Positions 11,885 to 50,200 are shown, counted from the first letter of the stretch. The stretch: DNA of 64,000 nt from IMGVR_UViG_3300032236_001850:310001-374000, one strand, 5' to 3'. Notes: generated by a model from the letters alone, not told the origin. A program made the numbers and translations.

Positions 11885-13045
11885 ATGAATTTTGATTCCT
11901 TAGAAAATTTTGAATGGGACTTACCTAATGGTTTATCTGTCAATTCTAAAATCAAATCCCCGGCAGGATCTAAAATATATTGCCACGAACCTTATGCTGA
12001 CGAACTAGCGAAACTTTATTTTGAAAGCAATGATAAATTCGAAGGAGGATCCAAGGATCTTTTGGACGGTGGAGTTTATCCTTGCACAATTATAAGTGTT
12101 AAAGCTGATGAGGCTTTAGCGCAAACTAACTCTGGTCAAACAATCTATATTGATTTGAAAAGAGAAAGAAGAGATGCAGAGAAACTTAATATTACCGGGA
12201 TTGGTTTTTATCCTGGTGAGGAGCTTAAAGCAAGAGTTCGAAAAATGAACGGAAGCTATTCCGGTTCTATCATAGAATATTACATACACAGTCTTAGAGC
12301 TGAGTTATTTGAACAAATCAAAAAAGAAAGTAATGCTTACCTTGTTAAGATTGTTAGTATCAACAAGGGTGGATATATTGCTGAATTGTCAGGTATCAAA
12401 TGTTTCATGCCTGGTTCATTAGCAGCAGCAAACAAAATAACTGATTTCGAATCGTACATTGGTAAAGAAATGCACGTAATGATTGAAGGTTACGTTGAAG
12501 CTAAGGATATATTCATAGTTTCTTATAAGAAATATCTTAATAGAATCATGGATTCCAAAATACAGGAACTTGATCTTACTAAGAAATACAAAGGGTATGT
12601 TACAGGAACAAGTGACTTTGGTGTGTTTGTTGAATGGGATGATGTTTATACAGGTCTTATACACAAAACAGAATTTGCTGAAGGAAACAGCTTAGCTTCA
12701 CTTTCTCCTGGTATAGAAATTGAATTCTATGTTAAAGAGATAAAAGACAACAACAGACTGACACTTACTCTAGATCAACCACTTGAAAGAAACGTAATCA
12801 TTCAAGATTTGGAATCTCAAGTTAATGATGGAACTGTTGAACCTATGGAAGCAAAGGTTAAACACAAAAGAAAAAATGGAGCTTTGGTAGAAATACAAGG
12901 ACTTGGTCTTCTAGCTCTAATACCTCAAGATAAATTGGGTAAGAAAGGAAACAGTATTAAAGTTGGAGACGACGTTACTGTTATTCCTTACGAGGTTGAA
13001 ACGATCTCGGGAAAAATATTCGTTAAAGTAGTAGATGTCGGATAA
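11885..13045 (+). CDS. rpsA: ribosomal protein S1-like protein (about 4 S1/OB domains)
   Basis: NKGGYIAELSGIKCFMPGSLA and GYVTGTSDFGVFVEWDDVYTGLIHKTE match bS1 domain 2 and domain 3 patterns. Confidence 0.8.
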   Translation: MNFDSLENFEWDLPNGLSVNSKIKSPAGSKIYCHEPYADELAKLYFESNDKFEGGSKDLLDGGVYPCTIISVKADEALAQTNSGQTIYIDLKRERRDAEKLNITGIGFYPGEELKARVRKMNGSYSGSIIEYYIHSLRAELFEQIKKESNAYLVKIVSINKGGYIAELSGIKCFMPGSLAAANKITDFESYIGKEMHVMIEGYVEAKDIFIVSYKKYLNRIMDSKIQELDLTKKYKGYVTGTSDFGVFVEWDDVYTGLIHKTEFAEGNSLASLSPGIEIEFYVKEIKDNNRLTLTLDQPLERNVIIQDLESQVNDGTVEPMEAKVKHKRKNGALVEIQGLGLLALIPQDKLGKKGNSIKVGDDVTVIPYEVETISGKIFVKVVDVG

Positions 13046-14441
13046 TAGAACACATTTTGATAAGCTCAATGCACTTAGCTCTTCCGTAATTGGATTTGAA
13101 TTTGAATTTTTTACTGACCTTTTAAAAGGTAGGGCTGCCGAAGCATTATCCAAACTTATCAAAAAGAAAGTTGTAGTTTCCGAAAAATATCACTCAAAAA
13201 CACCTGTAGATGCCAACAATTTTAAAATTGAACCTGATTATTCTGGTGGTAATAAAATGGTTGAGCTCATCACAGGACCTCTTCCTTACATGGAAGCAAT
13301 TCCAATTTTAATAAAAATATTAAAATGGATAGATGAAAATGGATGGACAAATGATAGATGTGCATTCCAATTTTCTGTAAGCTTCGATAAAAACAGACCG
13401 GAAGTAAAGAACAAAATTGAAACTATCGATAAACTTAAGTTTATATTAGGCCTTGATGAAGGCCTAATATATTCCAAGTTTGGAACTAGAGAAAAAAATG
13501 TTTATGCCAAGTCTGTTAAAAAAGTACTTCCTAGAAATAGATTTTCAATACTTGAAAACATCACCAGCATAGATCCTAAAATGTACCGAGTACCAGAGGA
13601 CAAATATTATGGTGTAAATTTTACAAAGATACCAAAGGGTTACATAGAATTTAGATATCTTGGTAACAGAGATTATCAAAAAAAGATAAAGGACATAAGG
13701 GAAATAATTGATTATATAGTTCTTTACCTTTATGATATTCTAAGCGGAAGAATCAGTGGGTACACTAAACAAGATCTTGCTACTCTCCAGGGTATGATGA
13801 ACAAATATGCTAAAGTTGTTAGATCTTTTAGCGATCCTGAAGTTTTCTTTAGAAATTATCCAGATTTTCACATATTCATAGATTTAAAGGGTTGGGATGA
13901 AAATGTTAAGACCTATTTTTTTGCAATAAGGGACAAAATATTTGATCTTATTGTGGATGGTAATATAACATCCTGTTATTTTAACTATGATACAACAACT
14001 GGTAGATTCCAAGTTAAGGAAGCTAGAAGTAGAGGTGCATTTGAAATAAGTGGGGTTGATCTTATATTATGTGATATAAAAAATGCAACAGTTAGAAATT
14101 GTAACATTTACAACTGCTCCATAAAAAAATCATGCATCGAGGATTCTTATATTTTTGGTGGAACTAAGGTTATATCATCTAAAATAAAAGCAACCATAAT
14201 TGATTTCGGTAACGAGCTCAAGGATTCCTTTGTCGATTGTGAAAATAAGAATATAAATTGTAAGATAATTGGTGGAGTATTTAGAGCGGGGATACTTGGT
14301 GATAATTCAGAACTAAGTAAAGAAACCATAAAAATTAAAGCTCCGGAGGATATTAGAATGACAAGATTTGTTACTGATAGTAGACTTAAAAATCTTAACG
14401 ACAAATATGGTGGTTCCAAGTTTGGAAACATGAACTACTAA
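13035..14441 (+). CDS. putative amidoligase (COOH-NH2 ligase, Amidoligase_2-like) with C-terminal beta-helix-like repeats
   Basis: IGFEFEF, EPDYSGG, VELITGP, TNDRCAFQ, KYYGVNF and YIEFRYLG motifs in family order; C-terminal I-x-x-C/S-x-I repeats. Confidence 0.65.
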   Translation: MSDNRTHFDKLNALSSSVIGFEFEFFTDLLKGRAAEALSKLIKKKVVVSEKYHSKTPVDANNFKIEPDYSGGNKMVELITGPLPYMEAIPILIKILKWIDENGWTNDRCAFQFSVSFDKNRPEVKNKIETIDKLKFILGLDEGLIYSKFGTREKNVYAKSVKKVLPRNRFSILENITSIDPKMYRVPEDKYYGVNFTKIPKGYIEFRYLGNRDYQKKIKDIREIIDYIVLYLYDILSGRISGYTKQDLATLQGMMNKYAKVVRSFSDPEVFFRNYPDFHIFIDLKGWDENVKTYFFAIRDKIFDLIVDGNITSCYFNYDTTTGRFQVKEARSRGAFEISGVDLILCDIKNATVRNCNIYNCSIKKSCIEDSYIFGGTKVISSKIKATIIDFGNELKDSFVDCENKNINCKIIGGVFRAGILGDNSELSKETIKIKAPEDIRMTRFVTDSRLKNLNDKYGGSKFGNMNY

Positions 14442-15655: not shown

Positions 15656-17380
15656 ATGAATATATTTAAGAAGAATAATATACTTATAGATGGATTACTT
15701 GGTGATACATTTACCTTTCTACAAAGTACATATAATCAAACAGCAAATGTCTTCACCGTTGCTTCCGCTTGGGGACAAATTCTTTTTGTTTTGCAGAATC
15801 TTTCTCAGCTTATACTTTATTTTATTGAGGATTCCATAACAGAGTTAAACATTCAGGAAGCAACGAGGGACTATTCAATAAGAAGCTTAGCAAGGATTGC
15901 AGGTTATGACCCAGGTAGAGCTTCTGCTGCGCAGGGAGAAATTAGTATGGCTTGGAATACCAGGGAAGGTGATGTTTCTGGTGGTGCAGTTATTATAAAA
16001 AATAATTCTCAAATAAGATGCCTACAAAATGGTAAAATATATTCACTCAGATTTGGAAGTAGTGAGGTTACAATTCCGTTGGTAAGAGGTAATAGTATAG
16101 CAGCAAAAATAGTTCAGGGTAATTTCGAAACAGCAACACTTACTGGTACTGGAGTAGGTTTACAAAGTTATAATCTTCCATCAGCTTCCGGAGCTTATAT
16201 AGATCAATTTTATATAGATGTTTATGTGAATGAGGAGAATTGGAAAAGATATGATTCTTTATATGATATACCGCTTAATGGGAAAGGTTATCTTGTTAGA
16301 AGTGGAATACAGGAGGGAATAGATCTTTACTTTGGAAATTCTAATTTTGGTATGGTTCCGCCACCTGGTTCAATGATTAGGGTTGAATATTTACAAACTA
16401 GTGGTGTAAGCGGCAATACAAATTCAACAAAAGAATATCCATTGACTTATAAATTCGTAACCAGTGGAACTGATTTGTTTGGTAGTGAGGTTGATCTCAA
16501 TCTTTACATAGACATGAAAAATGTTATTGATCCATCTTTTGGAACAAATCCTGAAGCAATCTCTCTAATAAGATTAGTAGCACCAAAAACAAGTAGATCT
16601 TTTGTTTTTGCAAATCCGGAAAATTATGAAATCTTCCTAAGTAAATTTGGTGTTTTTTCACAAATACAAGCATTTTCCACTTTTGATGATGATTATCTTG
16701 ACGACGATAACATAGTTTATCTTTACTTAGTTCCTGATATCACGTTAAATCTTACAACAAATGAGGACTATTTTAGTGTACCAGATGCTGACTTTTTACT
16801 TACTACCCAACAAAAAACAAAGATTATAAATCTTTTACAGGATTCTGGTTCAATGATAGCTACAACAGTTGTTAAAATCGTTGAACCTGTTATAACAAGA
16901 TATGTTGTTAATGTCGTAATATCCATATTTGAAGGTTATGATCCTGAGACTATAAAACAAACAATAAGAAAAAGATTCTCCGATTATATGCTAGGTAATA
17001 AAAGAAGAGATAAAATACCCAAATCCGATCTTATTGCGATAGTTGAGGGAATACTTGGTGTTGATTCAGTTTCTTTATTTTTCGTTGGTCAAAAGAATGA
17101 GGCTAATCAAATAGCAATTAAGGATCTTACGAATGTTAGTGATGCTCAATATAATGAGGTTATAGGAATGGATAACTTTGGTGACATATTAATAGGTAGA
17201 AATGAACTAGTAATACTCAGAGGTGGATGGTCAGATAGGAATGGTACATTCTTTACTGATTCAATTGTAGCTGGTAAACCAGGACCTCTTAATATAACTA
17301 TTGCATCAATCGTACCTAAAAATTTAAGAAGCGGTCTAACAGATGATCTAAAAACACAATTAGCAGCACAAAATAAATAA
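15656..17380 (+). CDS. baseplate wedge protein, T4 gp6-like (baseplate J-like)
   Basis: SIRSLARIAGYDPGRASAA; LYFGNSNFGMVPPPGSMIRVEYLQTSG; follows gp25-like gene. Confidence 0.85.
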   Translation: MNIFKKNNILIDGLLGDTFTFLQSTYNQTANVFTVASAWGQILFVLQNLSQLILYFIEDSITELNIQEATRDYSIRSLARIAGYDPGRASAAQGEISMAWNTREGDVSGGAVIIKNNSQIRCLQNGKIYSLRFGSSEVTIPLVRGNSIAAKIVQGNFETATLTGTGVGLQSYNLPSASGAYIDQFYIDVYVNEENWKRYDSLYDIPLNGKGYLVRSGIQEGIDLYFGNSNFGMVPPPGSMIRVEYLQTSGVSGNTNSTKEYPLTYKFVTSGTDLFGSEVDLNLYIDMKNVIDPSFGTNPEAISLIRLVAPKTSRSFVFANPENYEIFLSKFGVFSQIQAFSTFDDDYLDDDNIVYLYLVPDITLNLTTNEDYFSVPDADFLLTTQQKTKIINLLQDSGSMIATTVVKIVEPVITRYVVNVVISIFEGYDPETIKQTIRKRFSDYMLGNKRRDKIPKSDLIAIVEGILGVDSVSLFFVGQKNEANQIAIKDLTNVSDAQYNEVIGMDNFGDILIGRNELVILRGGWSDRNGTFFTDSIVAGKPGPLNITIASIVPKNLRSGLTDDLKTQLAAQNK

Positions 17381-17922: not shown

Positions 17923-20900
17923 ATGGCAAATCTAAATCTTAATTTTTATAATAAAAACGGGAATCCATTAAATTTCGATTATATAGGACCAACCGGACCG
18001 ACTCCTCTTGATACTAAATTCTCCCACATATTAAGTGATTCTCCATTAGTTGCTGGTTATTTTGAATGGACCGACAATCCGGATGACTATACATTAACAC
18101 TAAATATAAATGATGTAAACAATACGAATTTATATAAGTGGTGTATCGAGGCTGAGGATTTTATTGCTAAAGGTGCAACTCTATACCTTAATGGATTAAT
18201 TCCTGTTGCAAATACAAATTTTAAGGGAAAGGTATCCTCAGTTACGATAAATTCTAATCAAACGTTTGACGTTGTTTTACCAAAGAGCCATTTCCTTGGA
18301 CAAAGTATATTAAGCTATGATACCCAAGTTTATTTTGAGGGAACTTATGAGAACAGACCTGGTGGATATTTCAAAGGTAACATTTATTTTGATCCCATTT
18401 CAACTAGTCTTTATGAGAATCAGCAAATATTCGTTGTTCAGGAATTTTTAAATCATTCCGGAGATTTAGTGTATGGATTACCTCACACATCCAATCTTGG
18501 TTTAACCGGAGGTAAATGGAGAACAAGATGGTATAATGATAATTATGGGGATATTGACGTTTCCGAGATTATATTTACCTATGCCATAGAGGACCAGCTG
18601 GAAGGTGGTGACGGACAACCTCTTATTGTTAGTTATCCAAATATGGTTATGCCAGTTGGCTCAAGTCTTAGTGATTCGTATTCAAATGGGTTTATAATTA
18701 GTAATAATATAGTTTCTGATGCTATAGGAATAAATGTTGCACTTAATTCCCCGGATGATCTGGAAAATGTTTATGAAAGGAAACTTATTGTTGAGGACAT
18801 ATCAATCGGAACCCCACAAAAAGTTATAGAAATTGACTTTTATGGACAGACAGTTGGTGAGGATGAGAGGTTTAAGGTGCTTCTTGAAAATATTGGAAGA
18901 TCGTTTTACAATAGTGATTCCATAATACTTAGAGATCACGATCCTGCTGAACCAGTTCCAAACTTTTTGGAAATCAACGAAAAAAGAAAGGAGTTACTTA
19001 TAGCTGGTGAGGATATATTCCCATATATAGGTAGTTATAAAGGCCTTATTAATGCCCTTAAATTCTTCGGTTATCAGGACATGAGAATTAAGGAGTATTG
19101 GTTGAATCTAAATTATAAGAACCTAAAACTTGAATCACCATTACAACAAAACCAATCTTTCCTTAATAAAATAAAAAATGAACAAGCAAAGAATGGTTAT
19201 TCACAATCATACACGATAGGGGATGTTCTTGATAATGAAAATTCAGGTAAATATAAATTAACACAGACATATGGACCTGACAATAAAGGAAATTATGTTC
19301 TTAATGTTACGTCCGAGAATTCTCAACTCCCTAGTAAATCACTAAAGAAAACTTCACTGTTTGGTCTTTATTATGATCTAAATAAGGTTACTGATGATGT
19401 TGACGAGTATGGATACCCTGTGGTTGTTGATGCTTTTAAATTCACTCAAGAGGAAGTTCTTATAAAAATCTTTGCTCTAAAGCAAAGATTGAAAAGAGAT
19501 TATCTTCCATTAAATGCCAGAATAATAGATATCACTGGGGAAGGTGTTTATTTCATGATACAAAACACAAGATCCTGGACTGATCAGATGTTAAGATCTG
19601 ATATAAACATAGGTTATGACTTTGATTTTTTTCCAAACCCAGATTTTGGCTTTATTGAGGATCTTAGAAATTTCACGGTAAGACCAAATCCAAACTATAT
19701 TCAGATCCCAAGCTCCTATGATAATTCATACAGTATTGATGTTTCCTTTCCTGGTGGAACCGGTAGTGCAATAAGATTTACCGGTGATATTCCTAATGGT
19801 ATAACTGGTGATAATCCAATATTAAAATTACAAGCAGGTAAGTCATACACTTTTAATGTTACTGATACTAATTCAACGGGATCGAATCTTAACATTACTT
19901 CCTTTGCTGGGTTTCCAAATTATCCTTACCAGTGGTCAACAAATACACCAACAGGTATTGTTAATAACGGAGCAACCGGTGGGTATTCCTTGCAATGGTA
20001 TATAGCACCTGATGCTTCGGGAACTATACATTATTATTCCACAACAAATCCAAGTCTTATGTCAGGAGTTATACAGATAGTACCTGCAACAGTATCGGAT
20101 CTTGGTAACATTATAAATCCTCTGGATGTCCAACAAAATTATACAGCAGCACAAAACGAATCACTTCTATCAGCAATAGCCAAATTTTATGATTTAAAAC
20201 AGAATGGTGAAATATTGGAACTTGGCGATGGTAGATTTGATCCTCCTGCTTATATAGATCCAGTAACGGGTAAGATGTACGAAACACCTGTGGGAATGCC
20301 GGTAATTCTGGAACTCTCTGCAAATAAGTGGATATGGAATGAATTAAATATAGATTGGGACGCATTACTTGTGCCAACTTATAGACCTGGTGATAGGGTT
20401 AAAGTTAAAGCTACAGGAATATTTGGATCAGTTATTACCGTTTATTATAGTAACGGCGAATATGAAATAGCTCTTGACAATTCAACTACTGGAATATTTG
20501 GTGAGGCTGAATTATACTCTGGTGTACAGAATTACAGCATGCTCAATTGGAAGAATATAGATTTTTCCAATATGATGGAAATTGAGTGGATATTAAATAA
20601 ATCCGCAACACAGACCGGTACACCTTACCATTTCGAATTTAGAGGATCCATAGTTGATTATTATAAACTTGCCCACTTCTTACCTTACACCGGAGAATAT
20701 CAAGTCATATGTAACACGTATGACGCTTTTAACGCAAAGACAACCGTTATTAAAAATGCATCAATCTACGTTGATCCGAAAACTGTCGATATAGATTCTT
20801 GGACTAGATATAGAGAGGTTGAAAATTATCTATGGGATAATGTTGATAGAGAATGGAGAGAATATGAATCCATATGGGAATATCCAGCCGAAGGATCAAC

Positions 20901-22710
20901 CATAGACGAACTTAGAAAAAAAATACCTTCGGAGATTCTTGATTTTGCAACATACGGAAATAAATCAAGAGATGGACAGGATGTTTATGTGAGAACAACT
21001 GAACCACCAACCGGAGCTTATGGTACAATAAAACTAAACCAAACAATTCTAAGTATTTCTTCCGTTGAATCCTTACAGATCTCGACCGGACAATATGGTT
21101 ATGCAAACATTATAACTCCTGTTGTACATGATCTTATGAGTGGTGACGAAGTAACTATAACCGGTAGTATTCCACAAATTAATGGTAGATGGTATGCTAC
21201 TGTTGTAGATCCGTATACGTTTTATATTCCAGTAACTCTTGATTATTCATGGAGCGGTGTTTTGAATCAAAGTACACCACCACAAAAGCTTTATGTTGAT
21301 ACTTCCATATACAATTCTCAAAAAATACTTGGTAGTGGAAGTTTATCTGTGTATGTTAATGATAGACTTATTGGATATAGTGAAACAGGTGACAGTTTAT
21401 ATAACACTGCAAATGAGATAACTTCAGCAATAAATTCATTAAGAACCTATCCTGATTATTTCGCTTCTTGTGAAAATCCACAGGAAGATCCAGTAACAAT
21501 CACAATTTATGCTCCTAGTGAACTTGGAGCAAATCAGAACGGGGTTTCTTTGAGAGTTCAAGAGAGTGGTTCAATTAATATATTTTCATTTACCCCTTCT
21601 CTAACCGGTGGTATTAATCCTAATGATTATTATGTTTATTGGGATGAAAATATGACAGAATATCCCAATCCAAATCTTAAATATTGGGGAACTAAAAGAT
21701 TGAATTGGGAGATATTCAACGAAAGTACCTGGGAGGATGGTTATGCTCATTCTTGGTATGATTATGAATTTAATAATGATTGGCTTGGTGGATATGAGTT
21801 ACATAGTTTAAGACACCTTGACACATTAAAGATATCGACCGCTAATGAAACTTATCCGTTTCCAGAAACTATGGTTTTCAGCGGGAGTGGTAAATTCAAA
21901 ACGTTAACACTTTCTAGTGCAGCAGCACAACTTAATTCTGCTGGACCTAATATAGAAAATTTTTATTATAGAGTTATACCAGACGACACTGGATCCATGC
22001 TAGCTACGGTTGGGCCAATAAATGTTGTTGTTGGTAATAGTGGATTGGTTAATGGACCGTATTATCCGCCACCGTCATTAGTTGGCGGTAGTCCATTGCT
22101 TATCGCTAATTTTGGTTATACTGGAGGTTCTCCTGTTACAACAACTACAACAACCACGACGACTAGTACAACCACAACAACAACGACAACCACAACAACA
22201 ACTAGTACAACCACAACAACAACGTTGCCTCCAACGACAACGACAACCACAACTGCTCCTCTTTATGATTGTAGTTTGTCTGGAACCGCTGTGGTTAATT
22301 ATCCAACTACAACCACAACAACCAGTACAACAAGTACTACTACAACCACAACTGCTCCACCATATGGAACATTTAGGGTTAGAAATAGTACAGGACATAC
22401 AGTAACAGGTAATTTTCAAATTACCTTGAATTCTGTTCCACAAAATGCTTACAGCGCTGGTTATGCCTCAATACCTCATACTGGATATGTTGATTTACCT
22501 TTAAATGTTTCATATACTACACCAATAACTGGATCATACGTGGTAACATTCTCAGGAACTGGTATAGGTACATCTAATTTATGTCAGTTACTTAATGCAC
22601 ATGTTGTTGGACCTGTTAATTTCACTTATATTGGCGGTAGTCAATATTACGCAGGATTCACTCTAAATAGTGGAAATTCTCAAAATGGATTTGAATTTGG
22701 TGTATATTAA
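17923..22710 (+). CDS. large baseplate wedge protein (gp7/P2 gpI-like segment) with C-terminal mucin-like poly-Thr linkers
   Basis: 1595 aa; FPYIGSYKGLINALKFFGY..IKEYW resembles the gp7/gpI wedge motif; follows gp6-like gene. Confidence 0.6.
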   Translation: MANLNLNFYNKNGNPLNFDYIGPTGPTPLDTKFSHILSDSPLVAGYFEWTDNPDDYTLTLNINDVNNTNLYKWCIEAEDFIAKGATLYLNGLIPVANTNFKGKVSSVTINSNQTFDVVLPKSHFLGQSILSYDTQVYFEGTYENRPGGYFKGNIYFDPISTSLYENQQIFVVQEFLNHSGDLVYGLPHTSNLGLTGGKWRTRWYNDNYGDIDVSEIIFTYAIEDQLEGGDGQPLIVSYPNMVMPVGSSLSDSYSNGFIISNNIVSDAIGINVALNSPDDLENVYERKLIVEDISIGTPQKVIEIDFYGQTVGEDERFKVLLENIGRSFYNSDSIILRDHDPAEPVPNFLEINEKRKELLIAGEDIFPYIGSYKGLINALKFFGYQDMRIKEYWLNLNYKNLKLESPLQQNQSFLNKIKNEQAKNGYSQSYTIGDVLDNENSGKYKLTQTYGPDNKGNYVLNVTSENSQLPSKSLKKTSLFGLYYDLNKVTDDVDEYGYPVVVDAFKFTQEEVLIKIFALKQRLKRDYLPLNARIIDITGEGVYFMIQNTRSWTDQMLRSDINIGYDFDFFPNPDFGFIEDLRNFTVRPNPNYIQIPSSYDNSYSIDVSFPGGTGSAIRFTGDIPNGITGDNPILKLQAGKSYTFNVTDTNSTGSNLNITSFAGFPNYPYQWSTNTPTGIVNNGATGGYSLQWYIAPDASGTIHYYSTTNPSLMSGVIQIVPATVSDLGNIINPLDVQQNYTAAQNESLLSAIAKFYDLKQNGEILELGDGRFDPPAYIDPVTGKMYETPVGMPVILELSANKWIWNELNIDWDALLVPTYRPGDRVKVKATGIFGSVITVYYSNGEYEIALDNSTTGIFGEAELYSGVQNYSMLNWKNIDFSNMMEIEWILNKSATQTGTPYHFEFRGSIVDYYKLAHFLPYTGEYQVICNTYDAFNAKTTVIKNASIYVDPKTVDIDSWTRYREVENYLWDNVDREWREYESIWEYPAEGSTIDELRKKIPSEILDFATYGNKSRDGQDVYVRTTEPPTGAYGTIKLNQTILSISSVESLQISTGQYGYANIITPVVHDLMSGDEVTITGSIPQINGRWYATVVDPYTFYIPVTLDYSWSGVLNQSTPPQKLYVDTSIYNSQKILGSGSLSVYVNDRLIGYSETGDSLYNTANEITSAINSLRTYPDYFASCENPQEDPVTITIYAPSELGANQNGVSLRVQESGSINIFSFTPSLTGGINPNDYYVYWDENMTEYPNPNLKYWGTKRLNWEIFNESTWEDGYAHSWYDYEFNNDWLGGYELHSLRHLDTLKISTANETYPFPETMVFSGSGKFKTLTLSSAAAQLNSAGPNIENFYYRVIPDDTGSMLATVGPINVVVGNSGLVNGPYYPPPSLVGGSPLLIANFGYTGGSPVTTTTTTTTTSTTTTTTTTTTTTSTTTTTTLPPTTTTTTTAPLYDCSLSGTAVVNYPTTTTTTSTTSTTTTTTAPPYGTFRVRNSTGHTVTGNFQITLNSVPQNAYSAGYASIPHTGYVDLPLNVSYTTPITGSYVVTFSGTGIGTSNLCQLLNAHVVGPVNFTYIGGSQYYAGFTLNSGNSQNGFEFGVY
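22138..22353 (+). repeat. low-complexity ACN-codon repeat encoding poly-Thr tracts
   Basis: A run of about 28 Thr/Ser, then LPP-T7-AP, then YP followed by about 16 Thr/Ser; synonymous codons are mixed. Confidence 0.95.
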
Positions 22711-22723
22711 AATTATATAAAAA

Positions 22724-23662
22724 ATGACAGTAACAATACAATTAACAGCAGCAGGAGCAGATACCGGATCATTTTCAATATTTTCCAATTTGGATCTAGT
22801 GACTCCCATAGTAACAGGTATTTCTAGAGCCTCTTTGTTAACCGGGTATGCGGTGGTTGTTCCCAATGGAGCTACAAGTGTTATAGTAAAATCAAACTCT
22901 ACACATTGTACAAATCAAGTAACTATACCTATAACAGGAATAACTACAACAACCACGACAACAACACAGATGTGTACAAGTGCAACTTACGGATATGATC
23001 CCGATATTGGACAAACAGCATGCGATAATTATATAAGTGGACCGAGTGGTCAATCTGTATATCAATGGAATGGATCTATTCTCTATAATTACTCATCTAC
23101 CGATCCTTGCGGATTAACAGCATCTATTGCTGATCCTGGCTATTATTCAGATGGAACGAACATTTGGTATTGGGACGGATCTGGTAGTTTCACCTATGAT
23201 AGTGCATGTAGTAATCTTAGAAATATAACAATCCATGCTAAGAGAAATGGATCAATAGTATCATCCGATAATCACGTAAGAATTGTTGTTAGTCAGGACG
23301 GTGGGGCAACTTGGAATGTAATAACCCCTAATTCAGTATTAACAGCCTCCTTTACATCAACAAATCAATGGACATACAGTGCAACTGCAGGAAATCCTTT
23401 ATGGATTGGTGCACTCCTTAGTGATGCTTTTACTGGAATCTCATTTGGTTCGGCCCTATCACCATCAAACACAACCTGTTTAAATCTTATGGCATATTGT
23501 GGTAATCCTTCGACTGTATCAGTGGTAGCTCCTGGGTGTACTTCCTTTGCTGGTCCGTTCTCATATAATTATGGAATAGTTAGCACTGATGCTGACATAT
23601 ATTTGAATTTTAATACGGTGTATGACGAGTTTTTAGGTAATATTTATATAAGATGCTATTAG
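22724..23662 (+). CDS. Cys-rich putative virion surface protein with a Thr8 linker
   Basis: 312 aa; small beta-rich N-terminal domain, TTTTTTTT at 22943-22966, several Cys. Confidence 0.65.
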   Translation: MTVTIQLTAAGADTGSFSIFSNLDLVTPIVTGISRASLLTGYAVVVPNGATSVIVKSNSTHCTNQVTIPITGITTTTTTTTQMCTSATYGYDPDIGQTACDNYISGPSGQSVYQWNGSILYNYSSTDPCGLTASIADPGYYSDGTNIWYWDGSGSFTYDSACSNLRNITIHAKRNGSIVSSDNHVRIVVSQDGGATWNVITPNSVLTASFTSTNQWTYSATAGNPLWIGALLSDAFTGISFGSALSPSNTTCLNLMAYCGNPSTVSVVAPGCTSFAGPFSYNYGIVSTDADIYLNFNTVYDEFLGNIYIRCY

Positions 23663-23705
23663 AAACAAACTTTGCTAGCTATCTATAATAATTAAAAGCT
23701 AATTG

Positions 23706-24668
23706 ATGTTAAATAAGGTTGTTTTTATTTGTGCCCAACCGGATGTTCCATATTTTCATTGGCAAGTGGAGGTTTTCATTCATAATGCAATGAAAAGTGG
23801 AATAAATCCAAATTGGATAGAAATTTTGTTCGGATATGATAATAACCCATCCCCCGAAGGTATGGCTCTTGCTAGAAAATATCCGTATGTGAGGGTTTTC
23901 TTTTATAAGAAGGATGTAATTGAAAATTACGGGTACATTCCAATAATAAGACCAAATATTCTTGCAAAACATTTTGCAGCATATCCTGGATTATCTGATG
24001 AAAATATTTTTTATCATGACTCTGATATAATATTCAGAGAACTCCCAAATTTTGATTCCTTAATAAAAGATAAAACATGGTATCTTAGTGATACTGTTTC
24101 ATATATAGGATCAGATTATATAAAGGGAAAATCTGTTGAATTATTCAACGAGATGTGTAATATAGCTGGTGTTGACCCTTTGTTAGTGGAGGAGAACAAT
24201 AAAAATTCAGGGGGTGCTCAATATTTAATGAAGGGAATAGATAGCGATTTCTGGAAGGAAGTCGAGTTTGTTTCCCTTGATCTTTATAAATACATGAGCG
24301 ACAGGGAGACGGAGGAAAGAAATAAATTATCAGAAACTGAGAATGAAACTTATAATCCAATCCAAAAATGGTGCGCAGACATGTGGGCAGTATTATGGTG
24401 CGGACTTAAAAGAGGTAATGAAATTAGAATATCTGATGAGCTTGGATTTAGCTGGGGATCATCCTACGGTACAACTGAATGGTACAAATATAAAATCATG
24501 CATAATGCCGGTGTAACTAATAATTTAAACGGCAAGGTTTTCTACAAAGGTGATTTTATAAACGAAGCTCCATGGGATCACGATTTTAGTGATATTGATA
24601 AAACCCACAATTCATATAACTACGTCCAAGCAATATTGTACGCTAAGGAAAAAAGGGATTCCCAATAG
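23706..24668 (+). CDS. GT-A glycosyltransferase resembling peptidyl-Ser/Hyp O-glycosyltransferases (GT96/GT95-like)
   Basis: DxD motif FYHDSDIIFR; PYFHWQ..HN..KSG, YIPIIRP, GGAQYLM, KWCADMWA and late HN motif; ATG at 23706 preferred over TTG at 23703. Confidence 0.7.
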   Translation: MLNKVVFICAQPDVPYFHWQVEVFIHNAMKSGINPNWIEILFGYDNNPSPEGMALARKYPYVRVFFYKKDVIENYGYIPIIRPNILAKHFAAYPGLSDENIFYHDSDIIFRELPNFDSLIKDKTWYLSDTVSYIGSDYIKGKSVELFNEMCNIAGVDPLLVEENNKNSGGAQYLMKGIDSDFWKEVEFVSLDLYKYMSDRETEERNKLSETENETYNPIQKWCADMWAVLWCGLKRGNEIRISDELGFSWGSSYGTTEWYKYKIMHNAGVTNNLNGKVFYKGDFINEAPWDHDFSDIDKTHNSYNYVQAILYAKEKRDSQ

Positions 24669-30713: not shown

Positions 30714-31487
30714 TTAATCTAAATTGTTATCCTCTTTGTATTTTTCGTAGTTATCTGTTAACTCAACTAGAATAGGATTTCTTACTATATCCTCCCTTGT
30801 AAAAGTGAATGAATCACATTGACCTACTCCGTTTGCTATTTTTTCTGAAAATGTAAGTAGGTCTTTTTTTCTTGCTTTTAAATCCCATTGTGTGATGTCC
30901 CCACAAATAACTATTCTAGAATTCTGACCCATTCTGGTTACAACAAGCATTATTTGTCTAAGGTCTGCATTTTGTGCCTCATCCAAGATTAATATGGTGT
31001 CATCGAAAGTTCTACTTCTCATAAAAGCTAGTGGCTGCATATCAATTGTTTTTGTATCAGTCATTAGTTTTATTTTTTCCTTTGCTTTTAGTATTTTTTC
31101 CATGTTAGAGATATAACCTTCCATGTAAGGTGCTATCTTTTCATCAACTGATCCTGGAAGAAATCCAAGATTTTCCCCTGATTCAACTGCTGGTCTAGCA
31201 AGGATGATTTTAGAATGTTCTCCCTTTCTTATAAGATCTAGAGCTGCATAACACGCCACGAATGTTTTCGCTGTTCCTGCCGGTCCAGTGCAGACTGTTA
31301 AGAAATTACTTTCGATTGTTCTAAAAAATTTTAATTGTGAATCTGTGAATTTGATGTGATTGAAATCTTCCTTCTGTAGAATTGGCCCTTTTGGTAAACT
31401 ATCAACTTTAGAAGTTTTTGTTGATTTTGTTTGTTTTTTCTCCGTCTTAATTGGAGCTGGCTCATTTTTTACTTTTTTTCTTGGCAT
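30714..31487 (-). CDS. phoH: PhoH-like ATPase
   Basis: GPAGTAKT Walker A variant, RPAVESGENLGFLPG, LAFMRSRTF, ILDEAQN, GDITQWD, DIVRNP. Confidence 0.95.
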   Translation of the reverse strand: MPRKKVKNEPAPIKTEKKQTKSTKTSKVDSLPKGPILQKEDFNHIKFTDSQLKFFRTIESNFLTVCTGPAGTAKTFVACYAALDLIRKGEHSKIILARPAVESGENLGFLPGSVDEKIAPYMEGYISNMEKILKAKEKIKLMTDTKTIDMQPLAFMRSRTFDDTILILDEAQNADLRQIMLVVTRMGQNSRIVICGDITQWDLKARKKDLLTFSEKIANGVGQCDSFTFTREDIVRNPILVELTDNYEKYKEDNNLD

Positions 31488-44006: not shown

Positions 44007-45548
44007 ATGCCGGTAACCAATATAAAATTTATAAATTATAGTGACGGTCAAAATCTAGCAATAGATAAAATAAACCACAATTTTGACGAAATTGTAGAAG
44101 CCCATGGTGGATCTGTTGGAGAAACTGGACCTAGTGGGGATAGAGGACCAATTGGAAGTAATGGTTTAATTGGACCGACTGGAAATGATGGTCCAAGGGG
44201 AACCAAATGGTTTGTGCAGGGAATTATGCCATCAACAACACCCGGAAATTCTGTGGTTTATGGAGATTATTGGGTTAATAATGGGGATAGTTTAATTTAT
44301 CAATTTGGTCCTACTGGATGGAATAGCACAGGATATAGTTTGTCGTCTTCCGGTAATATATTTAATGATGTTACCTCATATTTTACTAATGGAGGAACAG
44401 GAATTTCTGTTAAATTTGATCAGGTTTCACCCGAAAATTATACTTTTATAATTTCGGATAAATCTGCTCAGTCTGGAATAATTAACGAGAAGCTAGCAAA
44501 ATTCCTTATTTCCACAGATACCTCCGGAGATCCTTCGGCTCTTCTTGAATTCATGAAAAGTGATTTGATTTTAAGCAACGCTGGAGATTATGCATTACAT
44601 CCAACTTTCTCGTGGGCTACCAGTTTACCAACTGATAACTCGTTGAAGTTTGATGTTCCTGGTGGATCGTTATTAATAGGAGCATCCGGTGGATTTTCCT
44701 CGAATTCACAAAAAATTGATGTCTCTGCAGGTTCTGCTATAGATATAAATTACGGAGCAACTTCTGGATCTGGTATATCTGCAACTGGTGGAATCAATAT
44801 CATTTCATCAAATCCAACAAACGGTGTTTTTAATATACTAAGTGATAATTTAAGTATAACTGGTGGACATGCATCCTTTAAAAGTAGTGTAGAGTTAAAC
44901 GGAAGTCCAAGTGGTAATTCTCCATCAGTTGAACTCATCATTGGTGGGACATCAGGTTTAAGAACAAGAAGAACAGCAGATAATTTTAACACCATATCAA
45001 ACAGTGTATATAATGTTTCTCTTGAAACACAAGCTGATAAGGAATTCTACATAAACACAAAGGGTAAAATAAGAACTAAAAAACTTAAAACAGGTGTGAC
45101 TTATCAAAGTTATCAGAATTCAGCATTTAGTTCCGGTGGAACAAATTGGTATTTTATATCAAGACCTGGTGGTCCAGTTCAATCTACTGTTATTAAAAAT
45201 GGAAATACTGTTATAGTAACAATAAATGAACCTAACCCAATAGCAAATTTTGGTATTGGTTTGTATAGTGATCCGCTTTATTCTTTATGGGGTCCTGGAT
45301 CAATAGACAATGGACAAGCCATTGATATAAGTGTTTACTGTAGTCCAGATTTAAACCAAGGATCCAATACTCTTTTTAAATATATTGGTGTTGGTACAAC
45401 TGGTGGTGTGGTTCCCAAAGTAACTTTACCTACTCCAGCATCAGCTGTTGATTTTACTATTGTCAAGGGTGTAACTGGTAGTACCACAACAGTTTATTAT
45501 AAAGCTTATACTAGTGCTGGAGGATCTGGAGGATCTTTTACAGTTTGA
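44007..45548 (+). CDS. collagen-like tail fibre protein, paralogue 1
   Basis: KINHNFD, then 10 Gly-X-Y triplets (44109-44198), GTKW...GDYW. Confidence 0.7.
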   Translation: MPVTNIKFINYSDGQNLAIDKINHNFDEIVEAHGGSVGETGPSGDRGPIGSNGLIGPTGNDGPRGTKWFVQGIMPSTTPGNSVVYGDYWVNNGDSLIYQFGPTGWNSTGYSLSSSGNIFNDVTSYFTNGGTGISVKFDQVSPENYTFIISDKSAQSGIINEKLAKFLISTDTSGDPSALLEFMKSDLILSNAGDYALHPTFSWATSLPTDNSLKFDVPGGSLLIGASGGFSSNSQKIDVSAGSAIDINYGATSGSGISATGGINIISSNPTNGVFNILSDNLSITGGHASFKSSVELNGSPSGNSPSVELIIGGTSGLRTRRTADNFNTISNSVYNVSLETQADKEFYINTKGKIRTKKLKTGVTYQSYQNSAFSSGGTNWYFISRPGGPVQSTVIKNGNTVIVTINEPNPIANFGIGLYSDPLYSLWGPGSIDNGQAIDISVYCSPDLNQGSNTLFKYIGVGTTGGVVPKVTLPTPASAVDFTIVKGVTGSTTTVYYKAYTSAGGSGGSFTV

Positions 45549-45578: not shown

Positions 45579-47270
45579 ATGGCCCTTATAAAATTACTGA
45601 GAATAGAAGACGGAGATTCCCAAAAAAATCTAACTGACAAGTTAAATTATAACTTTAATAGATTAGTTACTTTTGGTGGTGGACCTTATGGGAGGATGGG
45701 TAAAAAAGGTCCCATTGGTCCAAAGGGACCAACCGGTCCTATTGGATCGCATGGAGATTCTGGTATAAGAGGAACAATCTGGACTGTTGGTGTTTGCCAG
45801 CCTTCCATTGCATCATCCATTGATGGTGATTATTGGCTTAATACTTATTCAGGTAATTTAGTTTATCAATTTTCTCAGAGCTCTGGCTGGAACTACTATG
45901 GATTCAATATAAAATCAACCGATTTATTTGATGTTTTTGGCCCACTTTCAACCTTAAGTGGTGTTAGTGCATATAGAGGATACTTTATAGCTTCACAAAC
46001 CCCTCTAAATTATACAGTTGTTATAAGTGATGCTGATCTTTCAAGCGGTGCAGGAGCAACTGCAGCAAATCTTTTTATTAATCCTCAGTATTCAAAATTT
46101 GTAATTGCGACTGATAGTAATAACACTTCGAAAAATTTATTGGAATTCAGTAAGGGTGACTACGCTGATGATGTGAGCTTCACTTCAAAAACACCAAAGA
46201 TTCTTTGGAATCCTGGTGCAACAGCTGACAGAGGTCCATATGGATTGTTATGGAATAATGACTATCTTAATATAAATGTCAGAAATTCCAGTTCTTCCAA
46301 TGGTTATTTTAATATAAAATCAAATACCGGTAATTTCTTAGTAAATTCTACCGGATTTAATTATTTTTCCAATGATCCCAACCAAATATCCAATCTTATC
46401 TCCTATGGAAATATAATTTTTGATTTAGGGTCGGGTAAAGTTCTTTTCTCTACTAAAAATATATCTTGGAACGTTGATAAATTTTATATAAATTCCTCGC
46501 TTGGTATATCAACTGGAGCATTAGAATCAGAATATGCTTTAGATCTTGTGTCCAGTGATTCTGGGTCTGGAAATCTTAGATATATTTACAATTCAAATGG
46601 TGTTAGAGATGCGGTGCTTATGAATTTCTATCAAAGTAGCCCATCATATTATCAATTATTTACTGTTACTGGTGATGGTGTAACATATGCTGATAAAACA
46701 GTAAGATCTGTACAAACACCGCAACAATTAACTCAAAGTGGAAGTAGTTCAACTTCCATAGGAACGGTTAATTGGGTTTCATTGGTTCCTTCGATAACAA
46801 ATACTGGATATATTAATGGCTGTTTTTATGTTAATAATGGTGCAGACCATATAATAGGAAAATCACCATCAGCATCGGCTGGTAATAGAGGGATATCAAT
46901 ATTTACACCAGCAACGGGTGGATATCTAAATAGCGAAAATGGTGGATGGCTAAATATCCTTGATAATTATGAAGCAATAAGCTTTACTGTAAGAAGCGAT
47001 AATCCAGGAGCAACTGGTAGTTGTTTTAAATACATAGGTCTAAATACAGATTATAATGAACAAACCTCACCTTCAACCCTACCTTCGCAATCGGATGTTA
47101 TTCTTGCTGGGTATGCAGCAAACATCGATATAACGATAATAAACATGACTGGATCTGGAGCAACGTTAAGTTCTAATAGATGGTTTAGAGTTTATTATTC
47201 TGCTTGGGGTGGAACTTTAAACACACCACAATGTGGTGTTATATCAACATATAATTCAATAGCAAATTAA
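45579..47270 (+). CDS. collagen-like tail fibre protein, paralogue 2
   Basis: KLNYNFN, then 10 Gly-X-Y triplets (45681-45770), GTIW...GDYW. Confidence 0.7.
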   Translation: MALIKLLRIEDGDSQKNLTDKLNYNFNRLVTFGGGPYGRMGKKGPIGPKGPTGPIGSHGDSGIRGTIWTVGVCQPSIASSIDGDYWLNTYSGNLVYQFSQSSGWNYYGFNIKSTDLFDVFGPLSTLSGVSAYRGYFIASQTPLNYTVVISDADLSSGAGATAANLFINPQYSKFVIATDSNNTSKNLLEFSKGDYADDVSFTSKTPKILWNPGATADRGPYGLLWNNDYLNINVRNSSSSNGYFNIKSNTGNFLVNSTGFNYFSNDPNQISNLISYGNIIFDLGSGKVLFSTKNISWNVDKFYINSSLGISTGALESEYALDLVSSDSGSGNLRYIYNSNGVRDAVLMNFYQSSPSYYQLFTVTGDGVTYADKTVRSVQTPQQLTQSGSSSTSIGTVNWVSLVPSITNTGYINGCFYVNNGADHIIGKSPSASAGNRGISIFTPATGGYLNSENGGWLNILDNYEAISFTVRSDNPGATGSCFKYIGLNTDYNEQTSPSTLPSQSDVILAGYAANIDITIINMTGSGATLSSNRWFRVYYSAWGGTLNTPQCGVISTYNSIAN

Positions 47271-47278
47271 TAAGGAAG

Positions 47279-50200
47279 ATGCATTTTAATACTAAATACA
47301 TATTTAAGGGTGATACCGAAAAAGAAATAATTGGAAAAATCAATTATAATTTTGATCAAATACTTTCATTTGCAATAGGTCCCGATGGTCATCCTGGTCC
47401 AAGAGGAGCAACAGGTATCTTTGGACCTGCTGGTAAAAGAGGTCCGAGTGGGAGCCCTGGAATTAGAGCATCGAAATGGTATAAGCAACCGACGGAACCT
47501 TCCGATGCACCAAATACTAATGATGTTTGGATAGACAATTCGGTTTCTGATGGAAATATAAAGATATTTAATTATCCTATAACAAATTACCAATGGCAGA
47601 ACAGCGGATATTCTTTTTTGAATTCCAAATATTTCCAATCCTATTCATATATCCAAGGACCTGGTGGTGCTACTGATAAATATGTGATAGGTTTTAAATA
47701 TCCTGGCGGTATAACAGGTTCAGCTAATACCTCTCTTTTAATAAGTGATTTCAATCTTAATTCTGTAAAATCAAATCCTAATAATTCCAAGGTTGTCGTA
47801 TCCACACAAGATCAAATTGATAGGCCCATTATGACTTTTTCTAAAAATGGTGCTATCTCCGATGATGTTCCATCATTCTATTGGAACTCGACAGGTAATA
47901 ATGCTGGATTGAAGTTTGATATTGGCGGTGCTTTTAGTGTAACAACAAATAATGATTTTTCTATAGACAGCGGACTTGCTAGAACCCTTATTACATCCAA
48001 TCTTTCAACATTTAGAAACAATCAGGGTGCATTCAATGTTCACGGTGATGGTGATTTTTTATTTGCTAGTAACATTGGTTTAGGTGTTGGCGGATTTTTA
48101 AGTATAACTACAAAAAATTTACAGGTTGATAATTCTTCTGTAAATCATTATGGCGGTGTAACTATAACATCACCTCTGACATCGACCTATATACTTAATT
48201 CGAAACCGAGTTCCCCGTCATATCTGAATGGAATATCTGCTAATATAAAAACGTCTGCTGTTATAAGAACCTTTGAATTTGAAGATTATACTGGGAATGC
48301 CATTATGTACGGTAAACCATCTGGATCTGTTTCTAGTGGAAATCTTGCACAGACCGTGTTTGGCACTAGCGGTGGTTTTACTGGTGGAACTGGAGGACCT
48401 TTTTCTTACCATGTTAGAAAGGTGAAAGAGGTTAGACAATCAACAACTGGATTAAGTGCTAGACAATATCTAACAACCACAACAAACAATCTAACCGATG
48501 TATTGGATATGTCAACTAATACTATATGGGAAAATGACATAATTCTTGCAACACCTACCGCATACAGTAGCGTTTCTAGTTCAAATTTAGGAAGTTTTAA
48601 AGTTGGTGACATAGATTCAAGCTTTAATTATTCATCGGGCTTAGACATTTTTGGGTCAGGATTTAAAAATTCTTTAACTGGAACCGGTGTTTATGATGCT
48701 GTTGTTAATGATGTTTTTAGATTAACAGATGGAAGCGGAAGCACAATATTTGCTGGAAATTTTAAATATTATAATGATCAGCCAGTGAAAACGGGATCTT
48801 TAACTAATGTATTAGGTCTGGTTAAAGTCAATTCTGATGGTACGATGGATACAACATTCAGAGCCAACATTTCTGCAATTTCTTTAGTTTCTGTTACCTC
48901 CATTAATGGTGCTGTAGTTGATGAGTCTGGTGGTCCTTACGGAAGTGGTCTTATTTATATTTATGGTTGCTTTACTCATACTACAAACAAAAATGGGATA
49001 TTGTGTTTAAATTTGGACGGAACACTATATAGTACGTTCAATTCAAATATGGGTATTGGAATAAATTCTGGTTCCTCTATATTCAAAGCTGGTATCGATC
49101 CAACAGGTACTAATTTATTTGCTGTTGGTGATTTTACTTATTATAAAACAACAACAACTTTTAGAAATAAGTTAATGAAGATAAAAATAAATGGAGCATC
49201 GGATGGATTACTTAATACATCATTTTTAAGTGGATCGACTTCGGTGGGACCTGGATTCGTTGGTTCAAGCAATATTCCCTACTGTTTTGATTTTTTGCCA
49301 AGTGGTAATATAATTGTTGGAGGATCCTTTAATTCCTTCAATTCATCAACGAGCGGTTCACCATTTACTATTAATTCTGTCATTGAATTGAATAGCAGCA
49401 ACGGTTTAAGAGTAACCACTGGAGGATTTGCTAATATAATTTATTCTACATTTATAGCATCTGATCCTATTGTTTCATCTATTAAATATAATAGTTATAA
49501 TTCCTATATCTATATAGGTGGAAGTTTTTCCAAAATAAATGGGACAGATTACGGAAGAATAGCAAGATTTACCATAACCGGAACAACTTTTACCCTCGAT
49601 TCAACTTTATCCTCAACTACAGGATTTAATGATATTGTTTATGATTTTGCTTTTGATGGTAGTAAAGTTTACGTTGGCGGAAGATTTACTTCTTATAGAG
49701 GAACATTATGTCCCGCTTTTGTTAAAATAAATAATAATGGATCAATAGATCCTACCGCTTCGATATATCACAACATTGTTAGTCCTAAATCAATTCAGCC
49801 AACATTTGAATGGACTGTTGGATTGGTTAAAAAAATGTACCTTAGTATAGTTGATAATGAATTCATGTATGTTGGTGGTTTTTTAAATAGTGTATTTTCA
49901 GCATCAGCTTCGAATAACGGAATTTATATCAAGGTACCATCATCCATAACACAAGATTATTTACCTGTTTATACCGATGGTACTACTACTAATTATAGAG
50001 TATTTCTTAATGATCCAGGCAATGATGCAAAGTTACACTATATAAAGGGATTGGTATTTGATGCTGGTTTACCGAATGCTGTGACGTCATATGTTGATTT
50101 TTCACAGGGTGCTACTGGTTGTCAATATGTGGATCTCATGTGGGTTTCTAAAACAAGTACAGCAAATATTGCTAATCCTAGACTTTTTTATAAAAACTGC

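Follow-up and report, generated by a model that had tools for sequence, protein, structure and literature searches.

A putative cassette for O-glycosylation of poly-threonine tracts in a jumbo phage, with an enzyme remotely related to plant SGT1 and HPAT

We analysed a stretch of viral DNA of 64,000 nt (IMGVR_UViG_3300032236_001850:310001-374000; hereafter the window), in which a gene for a 320-aa glycosyltransferase (GT) follows two genes encoding poly-threonine (poly-Thr) tracts. The original prediction, made from the sequence alone, held that this enzyme glycosylates the tract-bearing proteins and so makes stiff, protease-resistant stalks. The window is part of an IMG/VR contig of 434,509 bp (UViG_3300032236_001850; a 100% match over the stretch checked, at about 300001-364000), and related contigs are 270-430 kb long, which places it in a lineage of jumbo phages. 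Here we describe the locus, the enzyme and the linkage between the enzyme and Thr tracts in other genomes, and propose that the locus encodes a self-contained module for the O-glycosylation of virion proteins.

Genes and poly-Thr tracts of the locus

The genes and tracts that precede the enzyme gene are as follows (positions in the window).

15656-17380, plus strand: gp6-like baseplate wedge gene (PHROG 219 'baseplate wedge subunit', E 2.4e-32)
17923-22710, plus strand: 1595-aa protein adjoining the baseplate genes; enzyme-less relatives also conserve its body, residues 1 to ~1400
22123-22710, plus strand: extension at the C-terminus of the 1595-aa protein, made up of Thr linkers, a spacer of 17 residues and a ~118-aa terminal domain; present only in enzyme-bearing relatives
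22138-22224, plus strand: poly-Thr tract 1, 29 residues (27 Thr, 2 Ser), proposed O-glycosylation acceptor
22234-22254, plus strand: poly-Thr tract 2, T7
22306-22353, plus strand: poly-Thr tract 3, 16 residues (13 Thr, 3 Ser)
22724-23662, plus strand: 312-aa lineage-specific protein, the variable middle gene of the cassette, with a ~70-aa N-terminal beta domain, a T8 linker and a ~230-aa Cys-rich domain
22943-22966, plus strand: poly-Thr tract 4, T8, whose position is kept and whose length is 8-17 among homologues

The four tracts were the only Thr-rich runs of Ser and Thr of at least five residues in any reading-frame segment of at least 100 aa in the window. When residues were shuffled within each of the 39 main open reading frames (ORFs), runs of at least six residues occurred 0.18 times on average, compared with 4 observed, and the longest Ser/Thr run was at most 9 residues, compared with 29 observed. 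The tracts were found exactly where the original prediction had placed them (22138-22353 and 22943-22966) and, as it had stated, they are built from mixed ACN codons with no slippage-type repeat: ACA was used 31 times, ACC 9, ACT 9 and ACG 7, in addition to AGT 4 times, with the same codon at most three times running and no nucleotide periodicity. Compared with neighbouring genes, the Thr codons of the tracts were depleted in ACT (16% vs 38%) and enriched in ACA (55% vs 39%). The tract of the 312-aa protein occupied the same position, with a length of 8 to 17 residues, in nine homologues of 45-63% identity. The mixed codons, the lack of periodicity, and the fixed position with varying length support selection on the tracts at the protein level.

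The 312-aa protein had 14 homologues among 5.8 billion proteins, and unrelated Thr-tract proteins took its position in sister phages (loci L106, L112 and L116). Such hypervariability of the middle gene is as expected of fast-evolving distal binding domains. In the AlphaFold model of this protein (predicted local distance difference test, pLDDT, 69), the tract was disordered, and the model gave no significant fold match. The two tract-bearing genes, called structural in the original prediction, are putatively so by position: the 1595-aa gene comes after the gp6-like baseplate wedge gene, but neither Thr-tract protein matched a named family in Pfam and PHROG searches. A search for PDB sequence relatives of the gp6-like and 1595-aa proteins retrieved none.

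The glycosyltransferase and its plant and algal relatives

The enzyme gene and the motifs discussed below are located as follows.

23706-24668, plus strand: 320-aa soluble GT-A glycosyltransferase, proposed protein Thr O-glycosyltransferase (PHROG 4417, unknown function)
23751-23765, plus strand: YFHWQ motif; W19 is invariant and Q20 nearly so; aligns with YFDWQ of plant SGT1-type enzymes
24018-24026, plus strand: DSD motif (D105-S-D107), the DxD metal/nucleotide-sugar site; both Asp are invariant; aligns with plant DAD
24369-24386, plus strand: WCADMW motif; W222 and M226 are invariant; aligns with WISEMY
24501-24548, plus strand: stretch from H266-N-A-G269 to K281; H, G and K are invariant among 53 homologues; aligns with plant HYG...K at the same spacing

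The gene starts with ATG at 23706, and an in-frame TTG lies at 23703. The AlphaFold model of the enzyme (mean pLDDT 96.8; predicted template modelling score, pTM, 0.93) consisted of a single Rossmann-like alpha/beta/alpha domain. Comparison with the PDB gave 164 matches at E <= 1e-3, and the 50 best listed were nearly all GT-A enzymes. The best matches were retaining GT-A enzymes, that is, WbbM, the UGGT catalytic domain, glycogenin, Skp1 alpha-galactosyltransferase, XXYLT1 and LARGE1, with E of 4e-7 to 5e-5, a template modelling (TM) score of ~0.45-0.5 and identity of 7-13%. The model and the invariant DSD motif confirm the predicted GT-A assignment. Several of these best matches (glycogenin, UGGT, Skp1 galactosyltransferase, XXYLT1) act on proteins or glycoproteins, and the outcome that the original prediction had named as refuting, best matches to DNA- or lipopolysaccharide-modifying enzymes, did not occur. 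The two Asp of the DSD motif were invariant in both of our homologue sets (53 and 107 sequences); H266, invariant in the former and nearly so in the latter, is probably the third metal ligand. The N-terminus enters the first beta strand at once (residues 6-12), and both a hydrophobic anchor and a membrane segment are absent.

The family comprises 3,438 homologous clusters at 90% identity, none of which is named, and 836 representatives at 50% identity. Homologues occur in 77 phage records. Their public names are all 'hypothetical protein' save for one record of 'major tail protein' (phiFL2B). Pfam, NCBIfam and PDB sequence searches with the enzyme gave no usable match, and full-text literature searches found no description of the family or of its association with Thr tracts. 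We conclude that the family is unannotated, and we found no prior report of it. Matches to TAL effectors in the PDB profile search were rejected as an artefact, in which many ~1-bit matches were summed over a 34-residue repeat. The CAZy GT8 model (Pfam PF01501) matched neither the enzyme nor ~120 homologues even at E 10. The enzyme shares the GT-A fold, the DxD motif and a C-terminal His with retaining enzymes of the GT8 clan (glycogenin, UGGT of GT24, Skp1 alpha-galactosyltransferase of GT77, and XXYLT1), but it is as distant from them in identity and TM score as given above and has no GT8, GT24 or GT77 Pfam match. The resemblance to GT8 is at the level of the fold only.

Longer homologues were fused to GT7C, GT2 and GT6 domains; matches to GT25 were weaker and fell below threshold. 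Such fusions are expected of enzymes that take part in assembling a glycan. The second glycosyltransferase domain of many homologues is absent from the window, which would also fit an enzyme that only primes a glycan extended by host enzymes, or one that modifies the Thr tracts with another group such as sugar-1-phosphate, in the manner of Stealth/GNPTAB-type enzymes. We regard this alternative as unlikely. The matches that recall it, to GNPTAB (E 0.18) and to Stealth_CR2 (1 of 53 members, E 0.17), are below threshold and at noise level, and GNPTAB was not among the top 50 structural matches, all of which were nucleotide-sugar glycosyltransferases. The homologous plant enzymes SGT1 and HPAT form plain glycosidic bonds.

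This kinship to plant enzymes was part of the original prediction, which had named four motifs of plant peptidyl-serine alpha-galactosyltransferase (SGT1, GT96), a relative of hydroxyproline O-arabinosyltransferase (HPAT1-3, GT95). A metagenome scan for DNA encoding ILDADMIIR returned 39 loci, 32 of which had the peptide, and most also carried YFDWQ, YPAINKP and/or WISEMY. Where all four motifs were present, they occurred in the order YFDWQ, YPAINKP, ILDADMIIR and WISEMY on one strand, split by introns, in plant and algal genes. An intron-poor algal copy retrieved proteins named peptidyl serine alpha-galactosyltransferase at NCBI, all with Pfam PF23452 (HPAT). The motifs named are thus real and stand in the stated order in relatives of that enzyme. 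An hhalign comparison of the phage family with 43 diverse SGT1/HPAT-like proteins gave E 3.3e-5 with a probability of 72%, and that with the plant exon-derived set gave E 2.7e-4 over 233 collinear columns; the controls were weaker (0.26-0.46 for reversed sequences; 3.7e-4 for the best of 110 shuffles). HPAT (PF23452) was the only Pfam family that recurred on the core domain, below threshold in 1 of 53 and 3 of 107 homologues (best E 0.019).

The phage family and SGT1/HPAT have in common YFxWQ; Y-x-[PA]-I-x-[KR]-P; hhhh-DxD-h-I-h-R; GG; and W-x-x-[DE]-M-[WY], as well as the spacing from this last motif to H-x-G (42-44 residues) and on to K (14-15 residues), and the invariant residues of the two coincide. 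They differ in architecture: the phage enzyme is a soluble, cytoplasmic protein of 320 aa that lacks a signal anchor and the ShK and C-terminal domains, whereas plant and algal copies carry either a signal peptide or a membrane segment at the C-terminus. The acceptors of SGT1/HPAT and the one proposed for the phage enzyme are hydroxyl side chains in repetitive, extended, low-complexity tracts, which are Ser-Hyp4 or hydroxyproline (Hyp) in the former and poly-Thr in the latter. Extensins are the plant counterpart of mucins, and we know of no bacteria that make Hyp-rich extensins. Taken together, the comparisons give moderate support to remote homology between the phage family and SGT1/HPAT. The predicted kinship therefore holds in this remote form and does not extend to membership of GT95 or GT96, since the Pfam threshold was not reached. 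A deep-learning survey of 2021 predicted GT96 as a novel fold (PMC8476585). Because GT96 appears homologous to a phage protein confidently modelled as GT-A, our comparison suggests that it is a GT-A variant instead.

Linkage of the enzyme to Thr tracts in phages and bacteria

We fetched 80 viral loci and three isolates, and used 76 distinct loci for tract density. The density of same-strand Thr tracts upstream of the enzyme gene was 119, 83 and 30 nt/kb in the first three kb, compared with 0.8 nt/kb in the first kb downstream. A same-strand ORF with a Thr tract lay within 3 kb upstream at 59 of 70 loci, whereas any tract within 3 kb downstream was found at 8 of 67. The 171 partner ORFs, with their tracts masked, fell into 59 unrelated clusters, so that the association is with the tract and not with one neighbouring gene. 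No Pfam domains were found in the partner proteins of the other loci.

Presence and absence were compared among sister jumbo phages in which the gp6-like gene, taken as the anchor, was followed by 10 kb of sequence. All 22 enzyme-bearing phages had tracts, and all 15 enzyme-less phages were without a tract anywhere in ~20 kb (Fisher p 1e-10). Where the enzyme is missing, the 1595-aa protein has an orthologue that (aligned from residue 6 to ~1400) stops at about residue 1400, where the first Thr tract starts in the window, and directly abuts the orthologue of a 626-aa gene. This precise truncation and the joint absence indicate that the unit gained and lost consists of the Thr linker with its terminal domain, the small variable Thr-tract protein and the enzyme. 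The joint state of enzyme and tract changed at least four times on the gp6 tree. The association with Thr-rich ORFs, expected under the original prediction, is thus very strong.

In siphophages infecting Lacticaseibacillus, Enterococcus, Staphylococcus and Clostridium, the gene for the enzyme lay either between those for capsid and connector or immediately behind that for the major tail protein. The tracts here make up the final 8-25 residues of capsid and tail-tube proteins. In seven isolated phages, capsid and tail-tube proteins recognised by annotation or by matching size ended in such tracts and were encoded beside the enzyme gene, and nine Firmicutes prophages had the same C-terminal pattern. 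Small ORFs consisting almost wholly of T7-VKP-type repeats were also found directly 5' of the enzyme gene (L003 5602-5988, L002 5722-5877, L139 7628-7987 and L140 7605-7922). The repeat ORF of VPE25 is unannotated. That of Staphylococcus phage RQ1 shares sequence with the 3' part of the gene for the major tail protein and so may be a frameshift extension of the tail tube protein. The 'assembly protease' of RQ1 (L140 1370-2491) carries four T7 tracts near its C-terminus, which extends the candidate targets beyond capsid and tail-tube proteins. For terminal Thr tails on capsid and tail-tube subunits, a surface glycan coat fits better than a stalk; stalks would fit the interdomain Thr linkers of the jumbo phages, and an adhesive surface is a further conceivable role.

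Wherever the neighbours of the enzyme gene were informative, they were morphogenesis genes (the window, iLp84, VPE25, phiCTP1, RQ1 and phiFL1A). The genes for hydroxymethyl-pyrimidine synthesis or replication with which DNA-modifying phage glycosyltransferases are associated were not what accompanied the enzyme. The one exception to the morphogenesis context was Herellevirus Bacchae, in which the enzyme gene follows recA and sigma factor genes, with Thr-tract ORFs on both sides. These observations bear on a second alternative, in which the tracts are plain unmodified flexible linkers, the enzyme acts on phage DNA or on host lipopolysaccharide, teichoic acid or capsule, and adjacency reflects co-inheritance. 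Most characterised phage glycosyltransferases do modify DNA or host surface glycans (PMC12619734), the top PDB match WbbM makes O-antigen, and a few viral loci lack nearby tracts. But the enzyme gene sits inside the structural modules of unrelated phage types, its partners have only the tract in common, gain and loss are perfectly joint with precise deletion of the tract-bearing extension, and the enzyme has no membrane segment, while its closest named relatives act on protein hydroxyls. A non-protein acceptor therefore seems to us quite improbable.

Homologues were also found on Bacteroidota chromosomes, in Chitinophaga, Pedobacter, Sphingobacterium, Mucilaginibacter and Elizabethkingia (loci L148-L218; e.g. 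L148 7125-14190 and L186 3624-13579). ATP-binding cassette (ABC) exporters with a C39 peptidase lay beside the homologue at 40 of 80 genome loci, compared with 0 of 83 viral loci. The clusters also contained LanB- or LanC-like genes, GT11 and GT2 genes, and genes for peptides that combine a double-glycine leader with a Ser-, Thr- and Cys-rich core; no Thr tracts were found beside the homologues of Chitinophaga, Pedobacter, Sphingobacterium and relatives. This chromosomal context points independently to peptide acceptors, and the clusters may represent an uncharacterised class of glycosylated ribosomal peptides. They resemble glycocin clusters in having a double-glycine leader peptide, a C39-peptidase ABC exporter and one or more glycosyltransferases; the glycocin transferases (SunS/GccA type) belong to GT2, unlike the enzyme of the Bacteroidota branch. 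The literature searched contained no characterised member of the enzyme family in glycocin-type clusters. The location among morphogenesis genes and the name of the phiFL2B record might instead suggest a GT-like protein without catalytic activity, which binds Thr-rich segments as an assembly factor or minor structural component. Such a role is very hard to reconcile with DxD, His and Lys residues that are invariant (His nearly so in the 107-sequence set) over more than 150 diverse sequences, with fusion to other glycosyltransferases, and with the occurrence of the same family in non-phage peptide-export clusters.

Proposed mechanism, related systems and the surrounding window

We consider cytoplasmic O-glycosylation of Thr tracts by the 320-aa enzyme, using a host uridine diphosphate (UDP)-sugar, to be the most likely mechanism, and a rather probable one. 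What the analysis shows in its favour is the fold, the conserved catalytic motifs, remote homology to SGT1/HPAT, and an enzyme gene that is genetically linked to the tracts. The cassette at ~22123-24668 would be a self-contained module for O-glycosylation of virion proteins. Its enzyme would be a cytoplasmic, metal-dependent, probably retaining GT-A glycosyltransferase from a bacterial and viral clade that is sister to the plant/algal HPAT/SGT1 superfamily. Late in infection, it would take sugar from a host UDP-sugar and attach it to hydroxyl groups within the poly-Thr tracts of the 1595-aa and 312-aa proteins, either ahead of baseplate assembly or while it proceeds. The glycosylated Thr linkers would become extended, hydrophilic, mucin-like segments that hold the variable distal domains off the baseplate. 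In Gram-positive siphophages, the same family would decorate the C-terminal Thr tails of every capsid and tail-tube subunit to form a glycan coat. What we infer in this scheme is that Thr accepts the sugar, that the chemistry is retaining, which sugar is donated, and what follows physically.

Several points weigh against this scheme. The window enzyme did not match the Pfam HPAT model even at E 1, and pairwise BLAST between the enzyme and an algal SGT1-type sequence was not significant, so that the relationship is visible to profile methods only; the homology is remote, with a profile-match probability to GT95/GT96 of only 72%. The assignment of a retaining mechanism, probable as it is, comes from the fold neighbours only, and the tract-bearing proteins are taken as virion components from their position only. 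Among the viral loci, 6 of 70 had no tract in the fetched flanks. The locus sets are 'best 80' lists that are phylogenetically non-independent, and the gp6 tree may misrepresent the history of the cassette if recombination is frequent.

On a wider scale, we lean towards a view of the family as the prokaryotic and viral sister of the plant extensin glycosyltransferases, and of its substrate as a portable 'poly-Thr glyco-tag' on baseplate appendages, whole capsids and tails, and exported peptides. Any phage protein that gained a Thr run would then become glycosylated in the infected cytoplasm. The users of the tag would be the baseplate appendages of jumbo phages, the capsids and tails of siphophages of lactobacilli, enterococci, staphylococci and clostridia, and the double-glycine-leader peptides of Bacteroidota.

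A related case is that of the mycobacteriophages (Che8 gp108-110, Corndog gp38 and Myrna), whose own glycosyltransferases modify capsid and tail-tube C-termini, according to Freeman et al. 2023 as cited in PMC12363180 and PMC11256854. These C-termini are the positions at which the Gram-positive phages with the enzyme carry Thr tracts. Homology between the enzyme and Che8 gp108, gp109 or gp110 was not detectable by hhalign (E 0.11-0.64), and there was no Mycobacterium phage among the 77 phage records. Unlike those of the enzyme-bearing Gram-positive phages, the Che8 capsid and tail-tube C-termini have no Thr tract, and the genes for the Che8 enzymes lie at a distance from those of their targets, in contrast to the single cassette formed here by the enzyme and the proposed acceptors. 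Mucin-type O-glycosylation (GT27) and serine-rich-repeat adhesins provide dense O-glycans on Ser/Thr-only tracts that form extended stalks, as proposed for the phage tracts, and adhesin glycosylation in Gram-positive bacteria is cytoplasmic, as proposed for the phage enzyme. However, the phage enzyme has no GT2/GT27 or ricin domain and is not a GT-B enzyme of the GtfA/B kind, and so this likeness is a functional analogy only.

To our knowledge, a few mycobacteriophages, with unrelated enzymes, are the only phages whose particles have been shown to be glycosylated. The family described here reaches from environmental jumbo phages to those of enterococci, staphylococci and the lactobacilli of dairy and gut. 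If the proposal is true, phage particles would be coated with glycoprotein far oftener than is now assumed, and such coats would influence how stable the particles are, how antibodies recognise them in phage therapy, and how they adhere to mucus or host cell walls. It would also bear on cryo-electron microscopy and proteomic data, in which C-terminal peptides are often missing. The tract and the enzyme would provide a simple, genetically encoded pair of tag and catalyst for mucin-like glycoproteins in the bacterial cytoplasm, and the family would give plant GT95/GT96 the first relatives from bacteria and viruses, with a soluble, easily crystallised model.

The window as a whole has a G+C content of ~34% and includes, besides the gp6-like gene, collagen-repeat fibre genes, phoH, and genes for SSB, primase and helicase. 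Megablast of the region found no isolated phage similar at the DNA level. The window ORFs scanned contained no second glycosyltransferase or sugar-nucleotide enzyme, and a promoter and terminator scan gave a signal no different from that of shuffled sequence. Just 5' of the baseplate genes, on the plus strand, lie genes for an S1 RNA-binding domain protein (11885-13045), an Amidoligase_2 protein (13035-14441) and a NUDIX hydrolase (1681-2265). The phoH-like gene (30714-31487, minus strand) is the sole sizeable minus-strand gene, in the middle of a long plus-strand structural block. Two adjacent fibre-like genes (44007-45548 and 45579-47270, plus strand) each have a short collagen-like repeat near the N-terminus (residues ~35-65). 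Among the fibre genes, a 1284-aa protein (47279-51133, plus strand) harbors a DUF5122 beta-propeller repeat and a C-terminal Hint-type domain (AXH, PT-HINT and intein-splicing models), which suggests a self-processing C-terminus on a tail appendage.

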